A DNA stretch of 24,969 bases from Octopus sinensis. Its lineage: Eukaryota. This document shows positions 3,470 through 24,876 of the stretch, piece after piece. Location: assembly GCF_006345805.1 (NCBI RefSeq), contig NW_021836196.1, forward strand, positions 1 through 24,969, read 5' to 3'. The stretch's first letter is position 1. Each line of letters begins with the position of its first letter. Made by a program: the position numbers and the translations under genes. The notes below the pieces were generated by a model. It searched no databases. It was given only the letters and a program-made list of their open reading frames with translations, and was not told where the DNA came from.

Positions 3470-3622
3470 TATGTAATTATAGAGTGAAGTTTTGGGCTTA
3501 TAAACCTAATGTTTTATCTTTTCTTAATACAAAACTAGGTTAAATTATTCAATATCAGATATGGCACTGTTAATCCTAAATGATATATTTATAGTATGTG
3601 TTGTTACTATTGTATTTTACAG

Positions 3623-3776
3623 CAGAAATACAGTCAACCGATTGAGGTGACATCTTATGGAGACAACAGACCATCCTCTAACTATCCCACTGACACACTG
3701 ACCAGTCGTAAGAGTAGTGGACAGTGCTGGAGTGAGCGGTCAAGTAGACAGTATGAAGAAATACCAGCAATGTCAG
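3623..3776 (+). CDS. Pcdh: Pcdh gene 1 exon B (cytoplasmic, QKYSQPIEV...RQYEEIPAMS)
   Basis: NAGNAG acceptor (TTTTACAG CAG), phase 0 in and phase 1 out (TCA G|GTAG at 3777). Near-identical copies lie at 14729 and 24726, in the same position relative to each large exon. Confidence 0.9.
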
Positions 3777-3918
3777 GTAGGATAACTATCTTCTTCAATA
3801 TTTTATAATTGATTAATTAATTATCATTGGTCATCAATTTACTTGCTTAAATTCAGAAGTATTCATTGATAGGTCATCATTCCACTCTTGGCTGTGGTCA
3901 AATAGATATCCATATTTT

Positions 3919-4221
3919 GTTTGTTCCTTCTCAAGCCATGCCTGGCTCATAAGGGCCGGATCTCCCGGTTTCCTTGGCGTATAGGTTCCCCACCTGGACA
4001 GGATGCTGGTCCGTTGCAGGTGAGCTGTAAGATGCAGGGGAAAAGAGTAAGAGAAAGTTGTGGTGAAAGAGTCAGCAGAAGTTCACCATTACCTTCTGCC
4101 GGAGCCGCATGGAGCTTAGGTGTTTCGCTCATAAACACACACATTGCCTGGTCTGAGATTCAAACCTGCGATTCCTCGACCGTGAGTCCGCTGCTCTAAC
4201 CACTAGGCCATGTGCTTCCAC
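3919..4221 (-). mobile_element. Full-length tRNA-derived SINE with 12-bp target-site duplication
   Basis: A box TGGCCTAGTGG (4200-4210) and B box GGTTTGAATCTC (4155-4166) on the minus strand. Flanked by the direct repeat TATCCATATTTT at 3907-3918 and 4222-4233. Confidence 0.85.
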
Positions 4222-4619
4222 TATCCATATTTTAGGTAGGATAAGTTCTTGTTGTCTTTCATATACATACAATTACTTGAGTTCAAAGTTGCTTGCAGAC
4301 TAAACACCAAGCATTCATTTATCATACATTTCTTTATAGAAACTTGGAAACAGCTTTCTTATGCAAATGCAGTCAGTCAAAGACTCCATGTACTGGATGC
4401 CAGAAGGTTTTAGGGGTCATCAGAAGAGAGTGTGAACTGTTTTGATGCCTTCCACTTGACAGCTTTACAGTGCACTGCCTCTTCTGCCTCCAGCTTTCCT
4501 GATGTGAGGCTTCACCTCCTGGTTTGACTGACTTGTATTCAACCTTGGGTCCATTTCAGGGTCATCACTTCTCCAGCCAAGCTTCATCATTCCTTCAGCT
4601 ATACTCAATCTCTGGCTCT

Positions 4620-4900
4620 CTCTCCACTAGATCTCTTTCAAGATGACATTTGCTTGCATAGTTTTGACACCAATTGATAGCATCCACTGTCTCAGTTTGG
4701 TTCCAATAAAACTTCTACATCCAACTTCTATAAAGAGGTCTTATTACTCTCCAACCAGCAGCTATACAGTCTTCGTGCAGCATCTCATGTCACTCATCTT
4801 TCCTAACCTGAGTTGCATCTGCATTGTTTTCATGTGGAACAGTCAATTCAACAAGATGTATTATTTTGTTTCCTCACCTTGTATTGTCAATCTGGCTCCT
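4620..4900 (-). mobile_element. Degenerate non-LTR retrotransposon fragment, restriction-like endonuclease (RLE; HERO/R2-superfamily-like)
   Basis: Minus-strand translation across stops and frameshifts gives KEPD~KIIHLVELTVPHENNADATQVRKDE*HEMLHEDCIAAGW~IEVGCRSFIG, matching my recollection of the PD..ELTVPxE..K..GW..EVGxRG RLE pattern. Confidence 0.62.
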
Positions 4901-5488
4901 TCTTTGTTGGTATTGGAAAGAGGCATTCACACCCTACAAGACCTACAATTAAATGGATGGCTTGAGCAAGGCTTAATTAATTGTCTTTAGTCACGTCAGA
5001 ATTCCGTAATGTTGACACATGAATTTTTTATCAGTTTGGTCAGCTTGCTATTAACTCAGTCAGTTCTGCTATTGTTTGTGACATAGTAGAGTTTATTGAC
5101 CCTTCATCAGCTTAGTATCCCTCTATTAATTCAGTTAGGTGTAACAACAGTGGTAAACCAGTAGAGTCTGTTGATAGATGACCAATTAGATCTTCCACCT
5201 AGTAACTCAACTGTGATACTGTTTGGGATAAGCCAGTAAAGCCTTCGGATCTTTCAGCAGCTAAGTCATCTGGTTATTCACCCAGTCAGCTGTAACACTG
5301 TGACAGAATTCAACAATGGTACCCCAGTAATCACTGATATCTTTCCATCTGCTAAGACAGCCCCTGGACAGCTCAGCTAGCAGTGTATATTATTAGTTAG
5401 ATTTATGAATTACAAACTACTGAGGTAAATATTATTAACACTATCCACTTCTCTTGTACCGTAAGTGAAAATTATCCTTATTATTAAT

Positions 5489-5643
5489 CATCATCATCAT
5501 TTAGCGTCCGTTTTCCATGCTAGCATGGGTTGGACGGTTCAACTGGGGTCTGTGAAGCCAGAAGGCTGCATCAGGCCCAGTCTGATCTGGCAGTGTTTCT
5601 ACGGCCGGATGCCCTTCCTAACGCCAACCACTCCGCGAGTGTA
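5489..5643 (-). mobile_element. 5'-truncated retroposon 3' end (RTE-like tail) with (ATG)n terminus
   Basis: Minus strand ends gtccaacccatgctagcatggaaaacggacgctaaatgatgatgatg. The same terminus recurs at 18151-18217 and 23641-23670. A possible TATTAAT TSD lies at 5482-5488 and 5646-5652. Family assignment is from memory, not a search. Confidence 0.7.
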
Positions 5644-5765
5644 TGTATTAATATTGTTAGAATTATCATTCCATGATTTTTTATTGTCATTTTGTGCTAT
5701 CATTGCATAATTGAACACAGCATCATGTGTTTTGACTACATGCAATGTTTTACAAGTTGTATAAT

Positions 5766-5990
5766 TAGGTGGTGAATTGGCAGAGCCATTACAGTGTCAA
5801 ACCAAATGGTTTGTGGTATCAGTTGACTCTCTGCCCTCTGATGTCAAAGCCTGCCAAGGTCACCTTTGTTTTCCATCATTTTAAGGTCATTAAAAAGTAC
5901 TGATTCAAGGCAATGGGTTGGCCGAACTGTAAGAATGTTGGACCATAAGTCCTCTGCTATTTGATCAGGCTCTTTGCTTTCTGAGTTCAG
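5766..5990 (+). mobile_element. Degenerate SINE-like copies
   Basis: Similar to the element at 17454-17668 (ggtgaattggcagag...ggtcacctttg vs ggcagtgagttggcagaa...ggtcacctttgcc), followed by a second head-like segment. Confidence 0.45.
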
Positions 5991-7420
5991 TTTGTGCTAT
6001 AGTCTGCTTGTGTGATAGACGTAACTCTCTCACCCTATTTAGCTCTACCACTTGGCATCTTAGGTGCCTTTAGCAAAGCCTACTTTGTTGCAAGCATTTA
6101 GGTCAGGAGCCAGCTGTGAGACTATCTTCCTCCCTCCTCCCAGCAATAGCAGAGGCCCACTAACACGTCATCGACACTGCCTTTCCTCCTAACTATAATA
6201 TTAAAAAAGAAAAACACAATATAATTCCAAGCATGTGCAGTGTTTGGTAGTGCTGTTGTCTGTATGTTTGTGCTTGTCTAATTACTGAGATATTGATTAT
6301 GAATTTGTCCACAACTTTTTAACCCTTTCCAAACTACCTGTTATTATGGGGATTGTTTCTGTTTTCAATCTCCACATTCTGATTATCTGTATTTCCAAAT
6401 CTTTATGTTTAGATAGTGAACACATTTCTTTTAAATATACACATCACTGTCTGTTTTAATATCTCCACTAATCTTGTACTGAAATATTTATGTCAACATG
6501 TCTAACTGAAATTGAAAGTATATTCTTGAAACTGTCAAATTATATGAAGTATTTCTTCTTGGTCCCTACCAGCAGTACCTGACTAATTTTCCCCTAATCT
6601 TCTTGTTTATGTGAATTGATATGTTATCAGAGTATGGTTACTTTATTGACTATACTGAAAGTAGGTCTATGGTCTATCATACCAAAGCAATGACAAGAAA
6701 ACCCTAACAAGGCCAATAGTTTTGTTTTAAAACTATTCCTAATTGAGATTAGGTCAGTTAGCCCAACAATACAGAGGCATATATTGTTATAATTTAGCCC
6801 TAGGTCACATTTGACTCACTAGATATATGACCAATGATATTCAAGTCAAGTCAGGATCATGCTTTCTCTTTTCAACACATAGTGTATCTAGGACTGTGTT
6901 AGTTTATTATCTTTCCTTTTTAAGGACAACAAGGGTTTGAATTGAGGGAAATTTGACTGTTATTTCTAGCAGGTTAATTACTCACGTATACTGCAATCCA
7001 TAAAGACCACCTTGCTGGCTCATCAAAAACCTGTTACAGATGACAATGTAAATGAGTTAATGAAAAGTAAATTAATTTTATAATATAAAAGGAGTTTTAG
7101 AAGTTTTTTTATGATGAAATATTTATTTCTTATTCATAAACTTAGCCTTCAAGAACAGTTATACATTCGTCTAATTTGATCAGCTTGTGAACCAGAGAAG
7201 TCACTAAATGAACTGTATTTTATTTAACAATTCCAATCTAATTAAGATATCATTTCAATGTAAATTATTTTAATTATTATTGTTGTTTTAATTTTATATT
7301 TTAGTTTAACTAACTGACTATAATCTTATTCACTGAATGTGGGCAAAAGATTGATTTCCAATTAATAACCTTTCTTTATGTAGAATATCTAAGATTATTT
7401 TATATATGTGTGTGTTTCAG

Positions 7421-7542
7421 GAATCTATGGTGGTGCCCCACCCGATGTATCAAGCACCAGTGAGAGAGACCATTACCAAGACAGATATGTGAAACCTCCA
7501 GAGAGACAGTTACCTTCAACACCAGATGTTGTTGTCAGTTAA
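7421..7542 (+). CDS. Pcdh: Pcdh gene 1 terminal coding exon C ((G)IYGGAPPDVSSTSERDHYQDRYVKPPERQLPSTPDVVVS*)
   Basis: TGTGTTTCAG acceptor ends 7420. Phase 1 matches exon B; TAA at 7540-7542. Homologous to gene 2 exon C (IYG...QDRYVKPPERQLP[S/A]TPDV). Confidence 0.85.
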
Positions 7543-8056
7543 GTGAGGTTGAGAGAGGAACACAACAGAAATAATATCTCACCTTCAACATTCACACAGT
7601 ATTTAAAAACAACAGAAATATATTAGTTACATAATAATATTATCTGCATTGAATTAGTTATATTCTTGTGTGTGTGTATATGTATATGGGATATTTCCTT
7701 AGAAGACTAATTTAGCAGCTTTGGATATGAACAATTTCAATCAAATTCTAACACTTTAATTGCATAGGCAAAAGAAATATTTTAAGAATTTAAAAATAAA
7801 AACTCAGACGAGGAAAATAAAATCTAAAATTTAAACAGTTTGTTAAATTATGATAAATAATTTTCATATAGATATACTTTCTCTGTTTACATATCTTGTT
7901 TAAATTTTCCAAATCTATCCTGAATAAGAGAGTTAGGTCAGACACACACACTAACTGTTATTGTCAATATTGTATTTACATTTTAAATTACACACACATT
8001 AACAACATCAGCCATATTTTGTTAATATAACCTCTCTGTTCTAAGGATTTCTATAT

Positions 8057-8487: not shown

Positions 8488-10914
8488 GTAAGTTTATTGT
8501 TCAATATTATTTATTCAAATTACGTGAAATAATGATTTCATATGTAGCCTTCCTGTAATATGAAAATGTAATATTCTGATGGTGGCCATATTAGATCTGT
8601 GTCAGTTCATATTGAATGTCTTCTTTTCCATAATGGCTATCATATAATTTACTAACAGGAGAACATTAAAGAAATGGAATATTTATTTTGACTTAACTGT
8701 ATATTTTAAAAATTATTTTGAGTACGTAGCAGTTTCCTGTTTCATATTTTACCCTGTCATTTTCATTATATTCGTAGTAATTATGTTGTATGTAATCATT
8801 GAAGTATATGTGAGGTTTATTCTAATTAGTTTAAATGTAAAATTTCTCATTGAAAGTATGACCATTGAGGTAGAGGCCAAGGAGTTTGTATGTATGTGTG
8901 TATATATATCTCATATTGTATATGTAACAGTTTATATATATATATATATATATAAAGGGGTTTGTATGATTGTGTATAGAGGGATATATATTATTCAAAG
9001 AAATTCCAACTCTGTCTGTTTTTTATGTTTTATTTATATTCTTTATGATATTAATGTAGAATATAGAATATATAGTATAAATAGTATATATAATAAAATG
9101 AAATGAAGTATTGATTGTCTTATCATATATATATATATATATAAACTGTTACATTTACAATATGAGATCTAGAAATGTATGTCCCTGTATGCATATGGAT
9201 ATTTAACAGCAATGCCTTTGAAATATTCATATTTTATTCCCCAAATCATAGGAGCACTAACCATATGGGTGGATCACTTATGAAAAATCTAAACCTACAT
9301 TCTTGAACATTTAGGCTTGAACTAGTTTTCAATATTGATTTGTTAATTTTGAATAATTTAAATGTATTTTATCATATAAAACAATTTCAAAAGATATTTA
9401 CTTCATTTCCACTTTTAATTTAGACATTCTTTCCATTTGTAGATTTTCATATTATTTTAGCCACAGTTCCTTTAATATATTGGTTAGTTTTTATTCCTGC
9501 TAGAAATAAGCAATATATTTTCTCTCTACTCCCTTCAATAGATTTAACTAAACATTTTATTATAGTTGCTCCTTAATTATTGCATTTTATATCTTCCCTA
9601 CATCATATTGTCAAAGCATTCTATAAATGACTGGAGATACATCTCTTATCAGTATCCTTGTAATTGACTTCTTCCATGAAAACAGTTAATCAAAATGTTT
9701 GTGAATTCAACTGATATTTGTATTAAATAGGTAAGATGTTTTATCAGCATCAAGAATAATAATTCAAGTACTGAACATGTTAAAATAGGAGAATTAGATC
9801 TAATTTGATCAATCGTAATTTACGTGTGTGTTACTATTAATGGGGACTGTATTGTCGCTAATATAACTGAATTTCTTTCATATCTCACAGCATCATGCTT
9901 ATTCTTTCTTAATAGTTGGTGGAGACGTTTTTTCCTGAGAATATCTCTACAAAATGGTAACACTATAGATTAGATAAGTCAGCTATTTTGTAATGTAAGT
10001 TGGGATATAAAGCTGTGCCATGTTTCTTTAGATATACTGGCACCAGCGAATTAACTCAAGCTTTACCATGTATGACATGTGTATACATAATTGTGATGAA
10101 AGAGAAGAAAAGTATTTGATACATCCACTGCTCTCTCTCTTTCTCTCTCTCTCTGGTACCTTACAGTCATACCAAAATATTAGACATAGATTAATATCAG
10201 GTTAAGAAAAGCAATGTTTAGATGGTCAGGGATTTTCTGTTAATTGCCAAGAATGAGCACTGAAGCAGTTCCTTGTTATTGTCTGTTATGCTCTGCCTGA
10301 ACAAGCATAGTTATGCAATGTCTCCTTATAATTCTGCTTGCATGTAAACATGGCATGGAGTTGATGAGAAATTATCTAAGATTAATTCACAATTCTTATA
10401 TGCGTCTTATGATACACTTTGCTTTAATCAGAGTCTATACCATAGATATATATGCAGAGTGTGTTATTCTAGTTTGTGTATAATAATCAATGTTCCTAGA
10501 AGAGGCTGCATTCAAAGACAGTTTGGTTGGTATAAAAGGATCAGTTTGTTGGAATTTTAATATTTAACATTACTGTCATTGTTGTTTCTTGTTTGCATCA
10601 TATCCCTATTAAAGAAATTCATTTGCATCATTTGAACAATAAAAAACTACATGTAAAGAGGGATGTGTTTCATATTGTAGCTTTTGTAAATTTACATTGA
10701 TTTCTCATTAATATACAAATAGATTAATAAGTATTTTTTAATTAACATTTTTCATATGGCAACAACCAAAATAGAAAAGAATTTAGAGTAGATGAATAAA
10801 CATTATGACCAGTTATGTTTCTTTTTTCTCAATAATGCAATGAATATTTCTATTTCAGACCGAACATTTGAAGCTGTCTTTCCCTTGGATACTGTATTAA
10901 CAACAAAACCAGAG

Positions 10915-13272
10915 ATGTTGCGATTTCTGTGTGTTTTACTGACTTTCTTCCACTGTTATTTAAGTGAAGATATCACTTACCATGTTGAAGAAGAGAAGAA
11001 TTCCTACACTTATGTAGGGGACATTGCTACTGACTTACAGAAGGCAGACAGCTCCTATTTAAAGAACAAGGATTTAATTACATTTAGTCAACTGCAACAA
11101 AAGGGAGAACAGTTGTTCAATGTGACGAGAACAGGTAAACTGTACACTGTTGAGACATTGGATGCTGAGTCTGTGTGTAGTTATGAGAAAGAATGTTTTG
11201 AAATCGTTAAAGTTGCTGTTCACAAATCCAAGACATTTATGAAGATCTTAAAGATTAAAGTCATAATAGAAGACATCAATGACCACCAACCTGAGTTTCC
11301 AACTGAAGAAGTCAACATTCAGTTTTCAGAGAGAGATAGTAAAGGTTCAAAACTATCAATACCCAATGCTGTGGATAATGATATGGGTTATAAGAACAGC
11401 TTAATTAATTATGAATTGAAAGAGGATAATGAACATTTCTCTTTATTAGTTGCCAAACAAGCTGATGGTATATCATCATTAGAAATTATTTTAGAAGAGA
11501 ATTTAGACAGAGAAACAAAAGACAACTACAATATTGAAGTCATTGCTAAAGATGGAGGAACTCCACCAAAACAATCTGTTTTAAATGTGAAAATATCTGT
11601 AGAAGATGAAAATGATAACAGGCCGCAATTTTCTCAAAGTATCTACAATGTTTCTATTGAACATAAACATAAAAAGAACATTCCAGTAGTCACATTATCT
11701 GCCAGTGATTTGGATATTGGCAAGAACGGTAAAATATCTTATTATTTCAGTAGAAAGACTGCAGAAAAAATGAAGAGATACTTTCATTTAGATAAAAGTA
11801 CTGGAAAAATTTTCTTAGTACAATCTTTAGAGGTTGACACAAAAAATTCTTTAAAATTATACATTGAAGCCAGAGATGGTGGCAACCCTCCTCTCAGTAC
11901 CATAGCAACTGTTATGGTAAATGTTATCAACCAACACAACAATCACCCAAATATTGATGTGAACTTTATTTCTACACAGAATCACAACACAGCTACCATT
12001 CTGGAAGACATCAAAGTTGGTAGTTTCATTGCTTATGTGATGGTCACTGACAACGATGTTGGACACAATGGACAGGTGAACTGTCATATCAAAGATGACA
12101 CATTCAAACTACAGTCAATGGGATCAAAGGAATATAAAATAGTTCTAAAGAAAGCAGTAGACAGAGAGACACAGGAACATTATCACTTTACTGTGTCGTG
12201 TGAAGATAAAGGATTACCTGCTCTGAAAACTGATAAAGATCTGTCAATCCAAGTGTTGGATGTGAATGATGTAGAACCACACTTCACGAAAGACACATTC
12301 AAGTTCCTTACCTATGAGAATGACAAAGCTAATTTCCCTATTGGCTTTATCAATGCTACAGACCCAGATATTGGTAAGGGAGGTGAATTGTCCTATTCTC
12401 TGAGAAATAAACAGAAATATCGTCTGCCATTCCAGATTATCAACTCTGGCTTTATTTCAACAAACCAGTCTTTAGACAGAGAACACAGAGATTTCTATGA
12501 GTTTGAGGTTTTTGTGAAAGACAATGGAAGCCCATCTCTGAATAACACAGTGAATGTTGAAGTGGAAGTATTGGATAGAAATGATAATGCTCCATATTTT
12601 ACATTTCCTAGTGTTGACCCTTTCACTCTTAATGTCCACTATCATCCGCAAAGTAAGAACGACATCACAGTTCTGAAAGCATCTGATATAGACAGTCACA
12701 TGAATGCTTTTCTCAGGTATGAAATCGTTTCAGGTAACGAGAGACAGTTATTTAAACTGGATTCGTTCACTGGTGTGTTATCTTACTCTCGCACAGTTTA
12801 CCAAAATGATGCCGGATCATATGAGCTTGAGTTTGTTGTAAAAGACAGTGGTACTCCAGTTCTGTCAGCAACAACTAGTGTGTCTTTGACACTGACTGTT
12901 AGTAACAAGACGTCACCAATGTTCACAGCTGTGCACCTACCAAGTGATAACACAATAGATGCAACATTGTTGATTATCATTGTAGTAGCAGCTGTGATAG
13001 TATCTATAGCTATTGTGGTTTCTATAACCCTGTGTATTGTGAGATGTAACAATGTGAGAAATAGCTCATCTGAAAGAACAGCAGAAGAGAAACAGGCATA
13101 CCAATGTCGCAATGAGATGAGACAGTTGATCTATCAAGGTAACAACAGTGTACCTGTGATGTCAGGTAATCGAGGAGAGATGTCAGAGAGATATGGTCAT
13201 TCAAGGAGCCATTACTATACTGAAGACTGGAAGACGTCAACAATGAGTCGGACACTTCAGAAGTCTATCAGG
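10915..13272 (+). CDS. Pcdh: Protocadherin gene 2, large exon (intact, 786 codons; full protein about 875 aa with exons B and C)
   Basis: Open frame with signal peptide MLRFLCVLLTFFHCYLS, six EC repeats, EC1 C-X5-C and TM. Acceptor TATTTCAG ends 10858, homologous to gene 1's at 293, so the true ATG is 10915 rather than 10792. Donor AGG|GTAAGC at 13273. Confidence 0.95.
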
Positions 13273-13449
13273 GTAAGCTTTTTCACTGTTTTGTTACTAT
13301 ATTCTTACTTTTCAAACACATCACCTTTGTCTTAATTAATTTTGGAAAAAACAAAGAATTTACTAAAATAACTGTTGAATTAGGCTGGTGTTCGGGATGT
13401 GAATGAACATGAAATTTTGTTGGAAAAGCTTTAATCTATATTGCTTTAA

Positions 13450-13669: not shown

Positions 13670-14728
13670 TTAAAGCAGTAATTTTATTTTATGCAGCTAT
13701 GTGTGGTGTCAGGTGGGATGGTATTGAAGGGGTTAATTTTATAATCTGTCACTAAATAGTATTCTATGTCTTTTTCCGTTTGCTCCTCTTATTTCAGTTT
13801 GTCATCGTCATTATTATTCATTGCTGTATTGTTTATCATTCTCATCATTACCTTTTCTTTGATTCTGCTTTAGTGTTGATGAGGAGTTTTGACATCTTTC
13901 ATGATGTCTTCATCTTAGATTATTTCAATGTGGAAAATTCATGCTCCTTATTTTAGTAAATTATTTATGCCTGGTACCATATCGAATTATATCAGTTTAG
14001 CATTACTGTCATCAGTCTGTATCCAAGTGATACCCTACTCTATTTGTAAACTTTAAATTCCATACACTCCAAAGTACTCCTTGTACCCTTAGCACTTCTG
14101 TTCTTTTATTAATTTTGGTCACCAATCTAGAGGATATTACTATTTATTTATATTTGATATTGAAGATTGCTATTACACTTTATCACCTTTTTTTTGTGTG
14201 TGTTTCATATTTTTTACATGGAAAATTGTCTGCTTATTCTGCAAACCTTGTGCTATGACATATGAGAATATTATTTAGAATAGTCTTCATTGCTAACTAA
14301 TGCTTTAGTCATCTCTCATTCACTAAGTGTTTCTAAAACTAGAACTAGGACCTGAGTTTAACAAACCTCTGTGGTTTTCAAAGATTTTCATTCTTTTTTT
14401 GATCATCCAAAAAGGTGAGTAGCATCAGAAATGGTAAAGCATTGGATTAATTGTTTGACAGTATTTGTATCTAGTTGTATGCTGAGTCAAAATGCTGCTG
14501 GAGTTTGCCTTTCATACCAGTTATGTATGGAGGGCAGTTCTATTGACTGTATTCTTTCCATAAAAAGGACCTTGTGTCTGCATAAGAAATTATTTTACAA
14601 TTATTTTGCCAAACGGATTGATATTGGTAAAAAAGTAGGCAGTTGTTTTATACCAAAGATGGATGCATACAACTCCAGAGAAAGTATCAATTATATTATC
14701 TATATCTTGTTACTATTGTATTTTCCAG

Positions 14729-14882
14729 CAGAAATACAGTCAACCGATTGAGGTGACATCTTATGGAGACAACAGACCATCCTCTAACTATCCCACTGAC
14801 ACACTGACCAGTCGTAAGAGCAGTGGACAGTGCTGGAGTGAGCGGTCAAGTAGACAGTATGAAGAAATACCAGCAATGTCAG
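14729..14882 (+). CDS. Pcdh: Pcdh gene 2 exon B
   Basis: NAGNAG acceptor TTTTCCAG CAG; one synonymous difference from gene 1 exon B; donor G|GTAAGG at 14883. Confidence 0.92.
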
Positions 14883-14968
14883 GTAAGGGTAGTTTAAACT
14901 AAGAGAATAACAAGGATAAATATAATATACAAAACTGACTCTATGTATTACCATTGTATATGTTCCAG

Positions 14969-15084
14969 CTATCTATGGTATGCAACAGGACCCCACAGCC
15001 AACACTGAGAAACTGCCCCAGGACAGATATGTGAAACCTCCAGAAAGACAACTCCCTGCTACACCTGATGTTATAAACAACTGA
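14969..15084 (+). CDS. Pcdh: Pcdh gene 2 terminal coding exon C ((A)IYGMQQDPTANTEKLPQDRYVKPPERQLPATPDVINN*)
   Basis: 86-bp intron 14883-14968 ending TGTTCCAG; phase 1; TGA at 15082-15084; homologous to 7421-7542. Confidence 0.88.
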
Positions 15085-18150: not shown

Positions 18151-18217
18151 GTCCAACCCATGCTAGCATGGAAAACGGATGTTAAACAATGATGATGATG
18201 ATGATGATGATGATGAT
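18151..18217 (+). mobile_element. Retroposon 3' terminus with (GAT)n tail
   Basis: gtccaacccatgctagcatggaaaacggatgttaaacaatgatgatg..., the reverse complement of the terminus at 5489-5540. Confidence 0.7.
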
Positions 18218-19173: not shown

Positions 19174-21543
19174 ATGGCAGATATGTTTGTAGCAATTTGC
19201 ATACTTCTCTCTTGTATGCATTGTAGTCTGTGTAAAGACATTACCTTTCATGTAAAGGAGGAGAATGTTCCTTACTATTTCATAGGTGACATTGCTACTG
19301 AAACTCTTGTCACCAAAACTCTTTTAACTGACGATGCCAGTCTCTTCACATTTAATCAACTTAAACAGAAAGGAACTCAACTGTTTAATGTAACAAAAGA
19401 AGGAAAATTGTACACAGCTCAAACTTTGGATGCCGAAGTTTTGTGTCGATATAACACTGAATGTTACAGAACTGTGAAAGTTGCTATCCATAAACATAAA
19501 ACATTTATGAAGATCTTAAAGATTAAAGTCATAATAGAAGACACCAATGACCACCAACCTGAGTTTCCTCAGAAAGAAATCACTCTACATTTTAGGGAAG
19601 CAGATGGTAAAGGTATGAAGAAGGCTATACCTAATGCTGTTGATAAAGATGTTGGATATCAGAACAGGCTGATTAATTATAAATTGAGAAATAATTCTGT
19701 GAAATTTGTGCTGTCTGTTTCTAAAAGAGTGGATGGAATATCCAGATTGGAAATTGTTTTGAATGAAAAATTAGACAGAGAGCAAAAAGATATCTATCAT
19801 GTTCAGGTATCAGCTACAGATGGGGGATCCCCACCTAAAGAATGTGTCTTAAAGATAACAATAATAGTAGAAGATGAGAATGATAATTTACCTCTTTTCT
19901 CAAATGACCTCTACAATATTTCTATTCAGAATACTTATCAAATATACAAACCGATATTAACTCCTTCTGCAAATGATAAGGATAGTGGTAAAAATGGGAT
20001 GATTTCTTATTATTTTAGTCCAATGACTTCTGATATTGACAAAACATACTTTGGCCTGAATAAAACAACTGGAGATATATTTCTAATTGATGAAATTGAT
20101 ATTGATGAAGAGAGGATTATGTATACACTTTATATAGAAGCCAGGGATGGAGGTTTTCCACCCCTGAGTTCCATAGCAGCTGTCCATGTAAATGTTATCA
20201 ACGAACACAACAAACCCCCAAATATTGATGTGAACTTTATTTCTACACAGAATCACAACACAGCCACCATTCTGGAAGACATCAAAGTTGGTAGTTTCAT
20301 TGCTTATGTGATGGTCACGGACAATGATGTTGGACACAATGGAGAGGTGAACTGTCATATCAAAGACGACACATTCAAACTACAGTCAATGGGATTGAAG
20401 GAATATAAAATAGTTCTAAAGAAAGCAGTAGACAGAGAGACACAGGAACATTATCACTTTACTGTGTCGTGTGAAGATAAAGGATTACCTGCTCTGAAAA
20501 CTGATAAAGATCTGTCAATCCAAGTGTTGGATGTGAATGATGTAGAACCACACTTTACGAAAGACACATTCAAGTTCCTTACCTATGAGAATGACAAAGC
20601 TAATTTCCCTATTGGCTTTATCAATGCTACAGACCCAGATATTGGTAAGGGAGGTGAATTGTCTTATTCTCTGAGAAATAAACAGCAATATCGTCTGCCA
20701 TTCCAGATTATCAACTCTGGCTTTATTTCAACAAACCAGTCTTTAGACAGAGAACACAGAGATTTCTATGAGTTTGAGGTTTTTGTGAAAGACAATGGAA
20801 GCCCATCTCTGAATAACACAGTGAATGTTGAAGTGGAAGTATTGGATAGAAATGATAATGCTCCATATTTTACATTTCCTAGTGTTGACCATTTCACTCT
20901 TAATGTCCACTATCATCCGCAAAGTAAGAACGACATCACAGTTCTGAAAGCATCTGATATAGACAGTCACATGAATGCTTTTCTCAGGTATGAAATCGTT
21001 TCAGGTAACGAGAGACAGTTATTTAAACTGGATTCGTTCACTGGTGTGTTATCTTACTCTCGCACAGTTTACCAAAATGATGCCGGATCATATGAGCTTG
21101 AGTTTGTTGTGAAAGACAGTGGTACTCCAGTTCTGTCAGCAACAACTAGTGTGTCTTTGACACTGACTGTTAGTAACAAGACGTCACCAATGTTCACAGC
21201 TGTGCACCTACCAAGTGATAACACCATAGATGCGACATTGTTGATTATCATTGTAGTAGCAGCTGTGATAGTATCTATAGCTATTGTGGTTTCTATAACC
21301 CTGTGTATTGTGAGATGTAACAATGTGAGAAATAGCTCATCTGAAAGAACAGCAGAAGAGAAACAGGCATACCAATGTCGCAATGAGATGAGACAGTTGA
21401 TCTATCAAGGTAACAACAGTGTACCTGTGATGTCAGGCAATCGAGGAGAGATGTCAGACAGATACGGTCATTCGAGGAGCCATTATTATCCTGAAGACTG
21501 GAAGACATCAACAATGAGTCGGACACTTCAGAAGTCTACAAAG
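19174..21543 (+). CDS. Pcdh: Protocadherin gene 3, large exon (intact, 790 codons)
   Basis: Signal peptide, EC1 with CRYNTEC, six EC repeats and TM. Acceptor ATTTCAG ends 19127; phase-0 donor AAG|GTAAAT at 21544. Confidence 0.95.
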
Positions 21544-22482: not shown

Positions 22483-22860
22483 GAGAGAGATCATGTGTGT
22501 GTGTATGTGTGCGTGTGTGTGCCTGTGTGTGTGTATGTGTGTTTTTGTATCTGAAACGTGTGTTAAAGAAAAAGAAGGAAAGAAAGAAAAGGTAGAGAAA
22601 GAAGAAAAAATTTTTGTTGATCTCTTTGCAGCTGGTTAGGTTGTCAATAATAATTTATTCTTGGCTTTTAGTAATGGCAAATCCAGCTGTTTACTCCAAG
22701 GGGGGCAAAATGTCACTTTTCAAAAAATTGTCTGGATTTCCTTTTTGTCATTGTCTTGTGAGAGAGTGTGTGTGTGTGTTTGTGCATGTGTGTGTGTGTT
22801 TGTATCTGAAAATGGTGTTAAAGAAAAAGAAAGAAAGGAAGAAGGAGAGAAAATTTGTGA
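22483..22860 (+). repeat. Local imperfect direct duplication of a ~100-130 bp (TG)n + GA-rich unit
   Basis: gagagag..(tg)n..tttgtatctgaaa..gtgttaaagaaaaagaa occurs at ~22483-22615 and ~22758-22860. Confidence 0.65.
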
Positions 22861-22940
22861 TTTACTTTGCATTGTTTTGGCCTTACCCATGATCTTTTAT
22901 ACAATATATTCTACACAATGCTTCACAGTAATTATTCCGT

Positions 22941-22946
22941 TATATA

Positions 22947-22977
<31 letters not shown>

Positions 22978-23164
22978 ATGTATGTATGTATGTATATGTA
23001 TGTATGTATATATATGTATATATATGTTTGTATATATATGTTTGTATATATATGTATATATGTATGTGTATATATGTATGTATATATATGTATATATATA
23101 TATATATACATATATATGAATGTATATATATGTATGTATATATATATATATGTATATATGTATG

Positions 23165-23195
<31 letters not shown>

Positions 23196-23377
23196 GTATA
23201 TGTATATATATATGTATATGTATATGTATATGTATATATATGTATATGTATATATATATGTATATGTATATATATATATATGTATATGTATATATATATG
23301 TATATGTATATATATTGTATATGTATATATATATGTATATATATATATATATATTGTATATGTATATATTATATATG

Positions 23378-23414
<37 letters not shown>

Positions 23415-23568
23415 GTATATTTATATATATGTATATATATATGTATATTTATATATATGTATATATATATGTATATATATATATATGTGTATATATATAT
23501 ATATATATGCATATTTATATATGTGTATATATATATATGCATATTTATATATATGTATATATATATGT

Positions 23569-23625
<57 letters not shown>

Positions 23626-23714
23626 TATATATATATATATCATCATCATCGTTTAACGTCCGCTTTCCATTGTATATATATATGTGTATATGTATATATA
23701 TATATATGTGTGTG

Positions 23715-23746
<32 letters not shown>

Positions 23747-23770
23747 CATACTTGTATACACACATACTGT

Positions 23771-23809
<39 letters not shown>

Positions 23810-23820
23810 GTACATACACA
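22941..23820. repeat. Large compound (TA)n/(TATATG)n microsatellite
   Basis: About 880 bp of TA/TG repeats, which generates the spurious YI-rich ORFs; interrupted by a retroposon stub at 23641-23670. Confidence 0.95.
23641..23670 (-). mobile_element. Retroposon 3'-terminal stub inside the microsatellite
   Basis: catcatcatcgtttaacgtccgctttccat matches the terminus at 5489-5520. Confidence 0.65.
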
Positions 23821-24725
23821 CCATTAACCACCTCTTATATGATATCACCACTATCTACCCATTTGTATACGGCATTAACCATATCTACCTGGTTATATCT
23901 GATATCCTTGCTAGTTGAAGAATGCTAGACAGATTCAGATTCTGTGTTGTAATTCTGGGGTCTTTTAGCTTAGAAAGGTCATACACTGTCAACATTAATG
24001 GGGAAATTCAATTTCCTGTTTGTATTGATATCTGGAAGTAATGGTGGAAGGGGAATAACTATCTCTGCAAGGGAATGATGGGGAGGTGGGTGTGGACTGA
24101 ATCAGCTGAAGATGTCCGAGGCAGGGTTAAGGGAAGGAAAATATGAGTCATACAAGGAATCTATTAAATAGTTGTTAGAGGAAATTACTTATTTTACTGT
24201 GATTAGAGCTGCAGGAACTGTGGTTCTCTCTGTTGTCATTTCTCTAGTCTTAAATAAAGCTGAAGATAAGAAAACTGAAAAGTGAAGGGGAAAGGGCCTG
24301 GAATTGTTTCTCAAAAACGATTATTTTGTATTTAATGAATACAAATGATTATAAACGAATTATTATATGGATTGCTAAACATGAGTCACTCCGATGAACT
24401 TATTAAGGATAGAAATAAGGAAGAAAAAGAACACTGTTGATCAGACTAAACTTTGGTCATTTCCATTCATTCTGAAGACACGGAATAAATCTACTGCAAC
24501 AAAGAATTTTAGACAACACTCTCTAGTATTGCTTGCCACAGTGAATTTTGTAGGGTTGACCATAGAAGTATCTGTTAAAATTAATATAATATTACTAATA
24601 TTATCAATATTATTAACACAGTTTTTTTTAAATTTAATGGTGTGGTCTGGAAGTAGGGGCTGTGTTTACGGCCTATGTTTGTATTATGCCATACCCACTG
24701 ATAAATGCCTTTTATTACTCATCAG

Positions 24726-24876
24726 AAATACAGTCAACCCATTGAGGTGACATCTTATGGAGACAACAGACCGTCTTCTAACTATCCCACCGACACATTG
24801 ACCAGTCGTAAGAGCAGTGGACAGTGCTGGAGTGAGCGGTCAAGTAGACAGTATGAAGAAATACCAGCAATGTCAG
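24726..24876 (+). CDS. Pcdh: Pcdh gene 3 exon B (gene continues beyond the window)
   Basis: Single acceptor CATCAG ends 24725. Same peptide as the other exon B copies minus the first Gln. Donor G|GTAAGA at 24877. Confidence 0.9.

Follow-up and report, generated by a model that had tools for sequence, protein, structure and literature searches.

The question raised by this stretch of Octopus sinensis DNA (24,969 nucleotides, positions 1 to 24,969 of contig NW_021836196.1 in assembly GCF_006345805.1, hereafter called the window) is whether the cytoplasmic tails of octopod protocadherins (Pcdhs) carry docking sites for Src-family kinases. The window contains three tandem octopod Pcdh genes, all on the + strand and with three coding exons (A, B and C) apiece, and an original prediction made from its letters had proposed a bipartite docking signature in the tails, consisting of QYEEIP at the end of exon B for SH2 domains and RQLP[S/A]TP in exon C for SH3 domains. 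We know of no described role for the cytoplasmic tails of cephalopod Pcdhs, the expansion of which took place independently of that in vertebrates. The answer that we favour, at a probability of roughly 0.45, is that the tyrosine motif is a phosphotyrosine docking site to which a Src-family kinase would be recruited via pYEE[I/L], with a putative SH3 contact added in the subfamily to which the window genes belong.

Conservation of the tyrosine motif

A degenerate search of the window for QYEEIP matched only positions 3749, 14855 and 24849 on the + strand, one in each copy of exon B (3749-3766 in gene 1, 14855-14872 in gene 2 and 24849-24866 in gene 3), and 0 matches to the back-translated Q-Y-E-E-I-P pattern are expected from 100 shuffles of the window. 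The claim that the motif is invariant in three copies is true of the sequence, but carries little weight by itself, as the whole of exon B is equally invariant: all of its codons are identical at the protein level across the three copies (51/51, with 0 non-synonymous and 1-6 synonymous differences), and the introns flanking it cannot be aligned between copies. Exon A is a mosaic: identity between the three genes is 55-98% over its first ~1050 nt (EC1-EC3) and rises to 97-100% from ~1050 nt on (EC4-EC6, membrane span and proximal tail), a pattern which points to gene conversion, whereby the 3' part would be homogenised while the N-terminal repeats diversify. Such concerted evolution of the 3' parts of the genes accounts for the invariance of the motif within the window, and inside the window the tyrosine motif is no better conserved than its flanks.

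Conservation beyond the locus was assessed in an octopod sample, consisting of the 120 top-scoring octopod Pcdhs among 2,435 matches (O. bimaculoides, O. sinensis, O. vulgaris and Argonauta hians). A full-length protein query was needed to gather these relatives, because tail-only searches recovered few of them (three proteins with a single tail, six with a 10-row tail alignment), and 119 cytoplasmic domains were then cut out by hydropathy. An exhaustive search of representative sequences with a tail profile gave 10 matches, of which P0007 and P0011 were discarded as unrelated repetitive proteins, and there were no squid tails among these 10. The pattern Y[DE][DE][ILVM] is present in 88 of the 119 cytoplasmic domains (shuffle mean 1.7), YEEI in 78 (mean of composition-preserving shuffles 0.17) and YEEIP in 71, whereas the acidic tyrosine pattern was found in 0/119 of the ectodomains of the same proteins; the comparison with shuffles overstates the significance of these counts because the related sequences are not independent, and the sound measure is that of the motif versus its flanks. 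When the tails were clustered at 50% identity, 43 groups were obtained, and in most groups having an exon-B-type segment the motif occupies homologous sites, between residues 114 and 156 of the cytoplasmic domain as extracted (about residue 126 for the YEEI of gene 2). Many of the shorter protein models stop before exon B.

A MAFFT alignment of 37 diverged tails was made without reference to the motif, and its columns were ranked after weighting of the sequences. Among the 166 columns, those of Y, E, E, I and P come at ranks 4, 8, 9, 12 and 19, with Y in 31 of the tails, E in 31 (plus D in three), E in 30, I in 24 (L in eight and V in two) and P in 28, followed by A or G in 28. The flanks are variable, with Q, H or L at -1, G, R, K, A or D at -2 (G in 14), and no constancy from +6 onward. 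The only better or comparable columns are those of the end of the membrane span with the juxtamembrane stretch and two isolated tryptophans, and away from the juxtamembrane segment only Y-E-E-I-P forms an unbroken run of top-ranked columns. The resulting consensus, [G/R/K]-[Q/H/L]-Y-E-E-[I/L]-P-[A/G] at the end of exon B and about 130 residues past the membrane, is met with in otherwise unrelated surroundings (HYEEIPGVS, LYEEIPR, EYEEIPDS, PYEEIPVV, PYDEIPAE, DYEEIHNM, HYETLPG and LYEELPGHK). The motif is clearly better conserved than its flanks family-wide, and the reservation that short motifs can arise by chance, which had accompanied the original prediction, falls away at the level of the family (YEEI in 78/119 versus 0.17, and [RK]xLPxxP in 48/119 versus 0.53). 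Octopod Pcdhs thus possess, in the tyrosine motif, a short linear motif that is genuinely conserved, and beyond this locus.

The alternatives that do without a protein reader can be weighed against the same sequences. In eight paralogue lineages the motif always lies 1-4 codons upstream of the exon B donor, and the constraint might be on RNA, with GAAGAA serving as an exonic splicing enhancer, or with the stretch forming part of an RNA-editing structure; this would suit the fixed placement of a purine-rich GAAGAA 10-20 nt from the donor of a small exon between long introns, and the identity of TAT GAA GAA ATA CCA in the window, in the orthologous O. bimaculoides locus (L001) and in a diverged paralogue (L002). 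However, other paralogues keep the amino acids while using GAT GAG, GAA GAG, ATT, CTC, CTT, CCT or CCG: the motif ends in ATA CCT in L004, and reads TAT GAT GAG ATA CCT in L005, TAT GAA GAG ATT CAT in L006, TAT GAA ACT CTC CCA in L003 and TAT GAA GAA CTT CCG in L007 and L008. Third positions differ while amino acids persist, which shows selection to act on the protein, and the common motif codons (GAA, TAT and ATA) are those expected anyway in an AT-rich genome. RNA folding of exon B with its intron was unremarkable in the window and in L008 (z = -0.23 and -0.19) and gave no editing duplex, and we consider an RNA-level explanation unlikely to the point of being very improbable. That the motif has no specific function, and is a chance sequence that spread when the 3' gene parts were recently duplicated and underwent gene conversion, would agree with the 97-100% identity of the 3' halves of the window genes, with the invariance of all of exon B, and with the homogenisation by gene conversion reported for cephalopod Pcdh clusters (PMC9068888). 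It does not agree with the finding that tails of less than 50% identity, from four species including Argonauta, retain the five motif residues while their flanks diverge, nor with a YEEI count of 78 against a shuffle expectation of 0.17, and such hitch-hiking is strongly disfavoured, with hardly any probability left to it.

The proline motif and the predicted disorder of the tail

Reading of the translations confirmed RQLPSTP at 7504-7524 (gene 1) and RQLPATP at 15046-15066 (gene 2), the latter a class-I-like proline motif (+xΦPxxP, where Φ is a hydrophobic residue). The Arg of the proline motif follows the Tyr of gene 2 by 34 residues in the spliced frame, as had been predicted, and the distance from Tyr to PxxP in the window genes is 34-36 residues. 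Exons C of genes 1 and 2 are diverged over their first half and have in common an 18-residue block, QDRYVKPPERQLPxTPDV (7477-7530 in gene 1 and 15019-15072 in gene 2), which differs by five synonymous and one non-synonymous (S/A) changes. RQLP[S/A]TP does sit in the best-kept part of an otherwise divergent exon C, and the ratio of five synonymous changes to one replacement is indicative of purifying selection on the protein.

Family-wide, [RK]xLPxxP is present in 48 of the 119 tails (0.53 expected from shuffles), in three subfamilies and at differing positions, the respective forms being RQLPxTP, KPLPA[LVI]P and RRLPPVP. In the subfamily of the window (about 35 closely related sequences) RQLP[S/A/T]TP is fixed, and the two types of exon C present in this subfamily are both found in Argonauta also; diverged relatives retain the proline motif as KQLPITP and RKLPSPP. 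The long-tail group ends in SFTSY[A/S/T]KPLPA[L/V/I]PK, which MAFFT placed on YVKP....LPxTP, and in the P0098/P0101 group the junction of exons A and B encodes RRLPPVP or RKRPPVP, with the RRLPPVP of P0101 located 48 residues upstream of YDEIP. In most other subfamilies the tail ends in Q[DE][ST]Y[LM][KQ]P... without PxxP. The bipartite SH2 and SH3 signature as originally proposed holds for some subfamilies, including that of the window, but does not extend to most subfamilies, where only the tyrosine half is found.

R-Q-L-P-[S/A]-T-P agrees with the class I SH3 ligand consensus in its Arg, its Leu and its two prolines and departs from it with Thr at the second Φ position, and K-P-L-P-A-[L/V/I]-P and R-R-L-P-P-V-P agree completely with +xΦPxΦP. 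We also considered LP[S/A]TP as a candidate Thr-Pro site of the MAPK/CDK type (PxTP), which would apply to the window subfamily only. Thr-Pro is missing from the KPLPA[LVI]P and RRLPPVP forms, which keep PxxP, and as PxxP is common to the three forms while Thr-Pro is not, a recurrent ligand in proline-helix conformation is suggested rather than a proline-directed phosphosite.

The tail in which these motifs lie contains 74% disorder-promoting residues and 11 tyrosines. AlphaFold2 gave it a mean pLDDT of 51.7 (from a shallow alignment), with a single juxtamembrane helix and no secondary structure after residue 32, and the tail is predicted to be disordered, which is the setting expected of short linear docking motifs; at 114-156 residues into the cytoplasmic domain, YEEI lies in this predicted-disordered part. 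In many paralogues [IL]Y recurs 6-10 residues downstream of the tyrosine motif. In gene 2 this is I-Y-G (14971-14979), the second tyrosine, 11 residues past that of YEEI, and with I at -1 and G at +1 it presumably fits the substrate preference of Src-type kinases. Another tyrosine is that of YVKP (15028-15039 in gene 2), a YxxP-type site inside the conserved block of exon C, with its K column at rank 21 and its P column at rank 16 of 166 in the 37-tail alignment, and which has Y[VLM][KQE]P-type counterparts at the C-termini of other subfamilies (QDSYMKPFL, QDTYLQPT and QETYLEPV). From these alignments YVKP/YxxP is likely to be a second conserved tyrosine motif.

Three further motif classes were tried and rejected. 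An immunoreceptor tyrosine-based activation motif (ITAM) consists of two YxxL/I elements with 6-8 residues between them; the second tyrosine does follow after six residues in the window, but there the sequences are YGMQ and YGGA, without L/I at +3, and the other paralogues (YKNN, YDFK, YNFR and YSAC) also have no L/I at +3. The inhibitory and switch variants (ITIM and ITSM; [S/I/V/L/T]-x-Y-x-x-[I/V/L]) do not agree with G (14), R, K, A or D at -2 in the 37 tails. Finally, RNSFTSY in the long-tail subfamily was compared with the WIRS consensus for WAVE binding and rejected, as its -3 residue is Arg.

Candidate readers of the motifs

The known specificities that these motifs fit best, as far as their sequences can tell, are those for docking to the SH2 and SH3 domains of Src-family kinases. 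All three window genes agree with the pattern of Src-family SH2 ligands (acidic residues at +1 and +2, and Ile, Leu or Val at +3), of which pYEEI is the published optimum. EPQ(pY)EEIPIA is a standard phosphopeptide that activates Src-family kinases via the SH2 domain, and QYEEIP is identical to its core. The same hexapeptide is present in hamster polyomavirus middle-T (EPQ(pY)EEIPIYL/EPQ(pY)EEIPIA), the high-affinity reference ligand for SH2 domains of the Src family, where the acidic +1 and +2, Ile +3 and Pro +4 are the residues that are also kept across octopod tails. The flanks differ, with -1 variable in octopus (Q/H/L), and the middle-T site is a proven phosphosite and SH2 ligand, whereas that of octopus is known as a sequence.

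The proline motif has its counterparts in FAK, where RALPSIP is the Src SH3 site, and in p130Cas, which is bound by Src SH3 at RPLPSPP and by Src SH2 at YDYVHL. As in these two proteins, a class-I-like RxLPxxP and a tyrosine motif are 20-50 residues apart in a disordered segment, and RQLPSTP matches RALPSIP of FAK at 5/7 positions, while the RKLPSPP of a paralogue matches RPLPSPP of p130Cas at 6/7. The differences are that the SH3 site is N-terminal in FAK (RALPSIP with pY397 AEI) and p130Cas, an order followed only by the P0101 subfamily, that the last Φ is Thr in the window, and that most octopod subfamilies have the tyrosine motif only. Vertebrate Pcdh-alpha interacts with Fyn, and clustered Pcdhs (alpha/gamma constant domains) have been linked to FAK/Pyk2 by binding and to Ret by Ret-dependent tyrosine phosphorylation; on Fyn, on the pYEEI ligand and on the paired sites of FAK and p130Cas, the background given with the original prediction agrees with the published papers. 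The vertebrate clustered Pcdhs resemble those of octopods in their tandem neuronal gene arrays, diversified N-terminal repeats, homogenised membrane-proximal repeats and tail, and, if the proposed docking holds for octopods, in having cytoplasmic tails tied to non-receptor tyrosine kinases. They differ in that their constant exons are shared, whereas in octopods every gene comes with an exon B and an exon C of its own; no similarity in tail sequence was found between the two, and the vertebrate tails inhibit FAK/Pyk2 rather than serve as known pYEEI docks.

What we infer from this is phosphorylation, a binding partner and kinase activation, in the following form. Homophilic engagement or clustering would lead to phosphorylation of the exon B tyrosine, and pYEE[I/L] would then recruit an SH2-containing cytoplasmic tyrosine kinase, most probably of the Src family. 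In the window subfamily the C-terminal RQLP[S/A]TP may add an SH3 contact with the same kinase, for which the disordered linker of 34-36 residues would be long enough in either order of the motifs, and SH2 and SH3 contacts together would release kinase autoinhibition, comparable with FAK and p130Cas. The neighbouring tyrosines of [I/L]YG and RYVKP are plausible substrates and secondary docks.

Several observations weigh against this proposal. YEEI also fits the YxxΦ signal recognised by the mu2 subunit of AP-2, as well as the SH2 preferences of Fes/Fer, Shc, Syk-type and Tec-type proteins, and we know of no SH2 domain that requires Pro at +4. The tyrosine has been lost in ~6/37 lineages (QFDDLS/HFDDLP, HCKLLPG, RKEELPG and others), and the exceptions HFDDLP/QFDDLS, HCKLLPG and RKEELPG are each stable across species; the lineage in which Tyr is replaced by Phe with the acidic residues and Leu kept hints at a phosphorylation-independent contact there. 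With respect to the proline motif, the PxxP half is absent from most octopod subfamilies, it is degraded to RQLSLTP and KQLSLTQ in two relatives of the window genes, and the second Φ position of the window form is Thr. The order in the window, with the SH2 site followed by the SH3 site, is the reverse of that in FAK and p130Cas, a caveat of the original prediction which we can only repeat.

The first of these overlaps forms the basis of a different explanation, in which unphosphorylated YEE[I/L] is a sorting signal read by AP-2 mu2 or by other AP complexes, and sets endocytosis and surface level. The YEEI of gene 2 agrees with the sequence requirements of YxxΦ signals for AP-2 (cytosolic, and at least 7 residues from the membrane), and Tyr (31/37) and the hydrophobic +3 (I/L/V in 34/37) are the best-kept residues, along with the acidic pair. 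As in known YxxΦ signals, Tyr and a bulky hydrophobic +3 are present in the unstructured tail of a type I membrane protein, far from the membrane, and in vertebrate clustered Pcdhs the cytoplasmic domain is known to control trafficking. However, YxxΦ signals need no specific residue at +1, +2 or +4, and the conservation of E (31), E (30) and P (28 of 37) exceeds their consensus, which suggests a more specific reader; a sorting signal also gives no role to the co-occurring [RK]xLPxxP motifs. We consider sorting by itself possible but unlikely. Readings by AP-2 and by SH2 domains are compatible, and phosphorylation could switch the same site from the one to the other, as tyrosine sites in CTLA-4 and L1 alternate between AP-2 and SH2 binding. 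The conservation of the motif would serve equally well for a phosphotyrosine reader from outside the Src family, such as a Fes/Fer, Syk/Shark-type or Tec-type kinase or Shc, with the proline motifs left to an SH3 adaptor of the Crk/Nck/Grb2 type. The published SH2 preferences of Fes/Fer, Syk/Shark, Tec and Shc overlap with pY-E-x-[I/L/V], the conserved YVKP/YLQP/YMKP ending is of the YxxP type that suits the SH2 domains of Crk, Nck or Abl, and PxxP is sometimes missing beside the tyrosine motif. Against this it can be said that pYEEI is the optimum of the Src family in particular, that the hexapeptide is the core of a Src-family activator, and that the RxLPxxP forms resemble the proven Src SH3 sites in FAK and p130Cas, and we would call such a reader unlikely too, to much the same degree as the sorting signal. 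Docking of a Src-family kinase is the reading that we retain.

Gene organisation, tail isoforms and significance

The window is AT-rich eukaryotic DNA (GC range 0.16-0.43), and in every gene exon A covers the signal peptide, cadherin repeats and membrane span along with the ~85 residues at the start of the cytoplasmic domain. The exon A product has Pfam matches to Cadherin (five stretches, E 1e-72), Cadherin_2 and Cadherin_CELSR2_9th, and the best full-length matches are O. sinensis models annotated as 'protocadherin beta-15-like' (90% identity). The genes have the features of cephalopod tandem-array Pcdhs, namely cadherin repeats in one large exon, a single membrane span, a non-catenin tail and their own 3' exons. 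A cluster of the vertebrate type with shared constant exons was rejected, as every gene has one exon B (three in the 25 kb) and the exons C of genes 1 and 2 differ in sequence. The orthologous O. bimaculoides locus (L001) has the same repeated A-B-C layout, and the exon joins are backed by protein models of orthologues in O. bimaculoides, O. sinensis and Argonauta hians, with P0001-P0003 connecting exon B to exons A and C. Cephalopod Pcdh arrays have been described as whole-gene duplicates without shared constant exons, homogenised by gene conversion (PMC9068888), and the layout of the window, with own exons per copy and homogenised 3' parts, agrees with this published organisation.

Gene 2 provides the complete example, all of it on the + strand. 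Exon A (10915-13272) lies within an open reading frame (ORF) of 10792-13335 and has its donor GT at 13273. Exon B (14729-14882) has 51 codons plus one base and encodes QKYSQPIEVTSYGDNRPSSNYPTDTLTSRKSSGQCWSERSSRQYEEIPAMS, with the Tyr codon of QYEEIP at 14858-14860 and the motif 10 nt upstream of the exon B donor. Exon C (14969-15084, stop codon 15082-15084) is the last coding exon and encodes (A)IYGMQQDPTANTEKLPQDRYVKPPERQLPATPDVINN*. When spliced (...13272 / 14729-14882 / 14969-15084), these form a single open frame ending in ...SRQYEEIPAMSAIYGMQQDPTANTEKLPQDRYVKPPERQLPATPDVINN*. For gene 3, exon A (19174-21543, + strand), of which the EC1-EC3 region is the most diverged among the three genes, and exon B (24723-24876, + strand) are inside the window, and exon C lies beyond its end. 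Gene 1 consists of exon A (350-2705), exon B (3623-3776, 154 nt) and exon C (7421-7543, with YVKP at 7486-7497 and the stop codon at 7541-7543), likewise on the + strand. Its exons B and C are intact despite a disrupted exon A, and the sequence of its exon C matches the C-termini of protein models P0001 and P0015. The reading frame of exon A is broken by frameshifting indels (alignment columns 659, 1160, 1268 and 1307 relative to genes 2 and 3), leaving ORFs of 350-1018, 1021-1515 and 1686-2765 in different frames, with the disruptions (small indels and an in-frame stop) located near 1009-1020, 1510 and 1618-1660; this is either a recently inactivated pseudogene or the result of indel errors in the assembly.

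The introns differ strongly between the genes, intron 2 being 3.6 kb in gene 1 (3777-7420) versus 86 nt in gene 2 (14883-14968). Intron 2 of gene 1 contains a GC-richer stretch at 4000-6000 (GC about 0.40-0.43) and a short repeat at 5486-5631, which is also present in inverted orientation at about 18151-18197 and in the O. bimaculoides locus, and probably represents an interspersed element. In gene 3, a long microsatellite tract of low complexity, rich in TA/TG, takes up about 22600-23950 of intron 1 (GC 0.16 in 23001-24000) and gives rise to spurious 'YIYIYI' ORFs of 150-316 aa on both strands. Inspection of the intergenic and intronic ORFs of the window gave nothing notable. At the start of exon B, genes 1 and 2 have a tandem CAGCAG acceptor (3617-3625 and 14723-14731), whereas the acceptor of gene 3 reads ...CATCAG at 24717-24722 with a single AG. 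The O. sinensis model P0003 is without the first Gln (...TRKYSQP), which other models retain (...TKQKYSQP), and both AGs of the tandem acceptor appear to be used, resulting in isoforms that are one residue apart.

Larger differences between tails are found in the annotated isoform series of several genes, in which the protein stops with exon A, continues to just past the YEE[I/L]P-type motif, or has the full tail including PxxP, and this suggests that the tyrosine and proline motifs can be included or dropped by 3' processing. For the long-tail Pcdh genes (P0140-P0168; locus L003, with a gene span of 53 kb) as many as 19 isoforms are annotated, the longest of which contain a further ~90 residues with NDVIDLKS...WNLP.RNSFT.Y.KPLPA.PK, in which the blocks DVIDLKS and WNLPxRNSF are conserved; regulated inclusion of these modules is suggested.

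The motif tyrosine itself differs between a transcript and the genome in another Pcdh gene. P0005, from an O. vulgaris neural transcriptome, and the genome-derived P0132 of the same gene differ in 1/852 residues, and this difference, Y843C, concerns the tyrosine of QYEELPG, which reads QCEELPG in P0005. The genome-derived protein is identical in O. vulgaris and O. sinensis, both genomes have CAG TAT GAA GAA CTT CCG (L008:16173-16190 in O. vulgaris and L007:15891-15908 in O. sinensis), and the O. bimaculoides and Argonauta orthologues have Tyr. A change of TAT to TGT in the transcript (A-to-G) is consistent with A-to-I editing, which has been reported as enriched in octopus Pcdhs. Local RNA folding of this gene in L008 gave no support for editing, Shoshan 2021 and its supplements make no mention of protocadherins or of tyrosine recoding, and the difference could be a polymorphism or an assembly error instead. 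That octopus neurons tune signalling with recognition unchanged, by switching the docking tyrosine post-transcriptionally through A-to-I editing and by using alternative 3' ends, is a speculative scheme that we hold to be rather improbable.

According to Styfhals et al. (PMC6339937), the cytoplasmic motifs of vertebrate Pcdhs are not found in octopus Pcdhs. In the same paper, the octopus-specific motifs of Albertin et al. are listed as EC1, EC5, EC6, TM (the membrane span) and a PP1 site, and YEEIP is not among the motifs listed there (PMC6339937). A full-text literature search, from which several key papers fell outside, found no paper combining protocadherin, cephalopod and YEEI, and the A. 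fangsiao genome paper has nothing on Pcdh tails. While SH2/SH3 docking motifs in the tails of adhesion receptors are of a well-known kind, their occurrence in octopod Pcdhs appears to be undescribed.

With a motif that is kept in most sampled octopod paralogues and that equals the reference ligand of Src-family SH2 domains, the question of how these receptors signal becomes testable at the bench, with SSRQ(pY)EEIPAMS for the tyrosine region and KPPERQLPSTPDV for the proline region as candidate motif peptides. If the proposed docking is true, clustered protocadherins would be tied to non-receptor tyrosine kinases for a second time and by independent origin, and if the motif tyrosine is also recoded, octopod Pcdhs would provide a clear case of RNA editing acting on a signalling switch.

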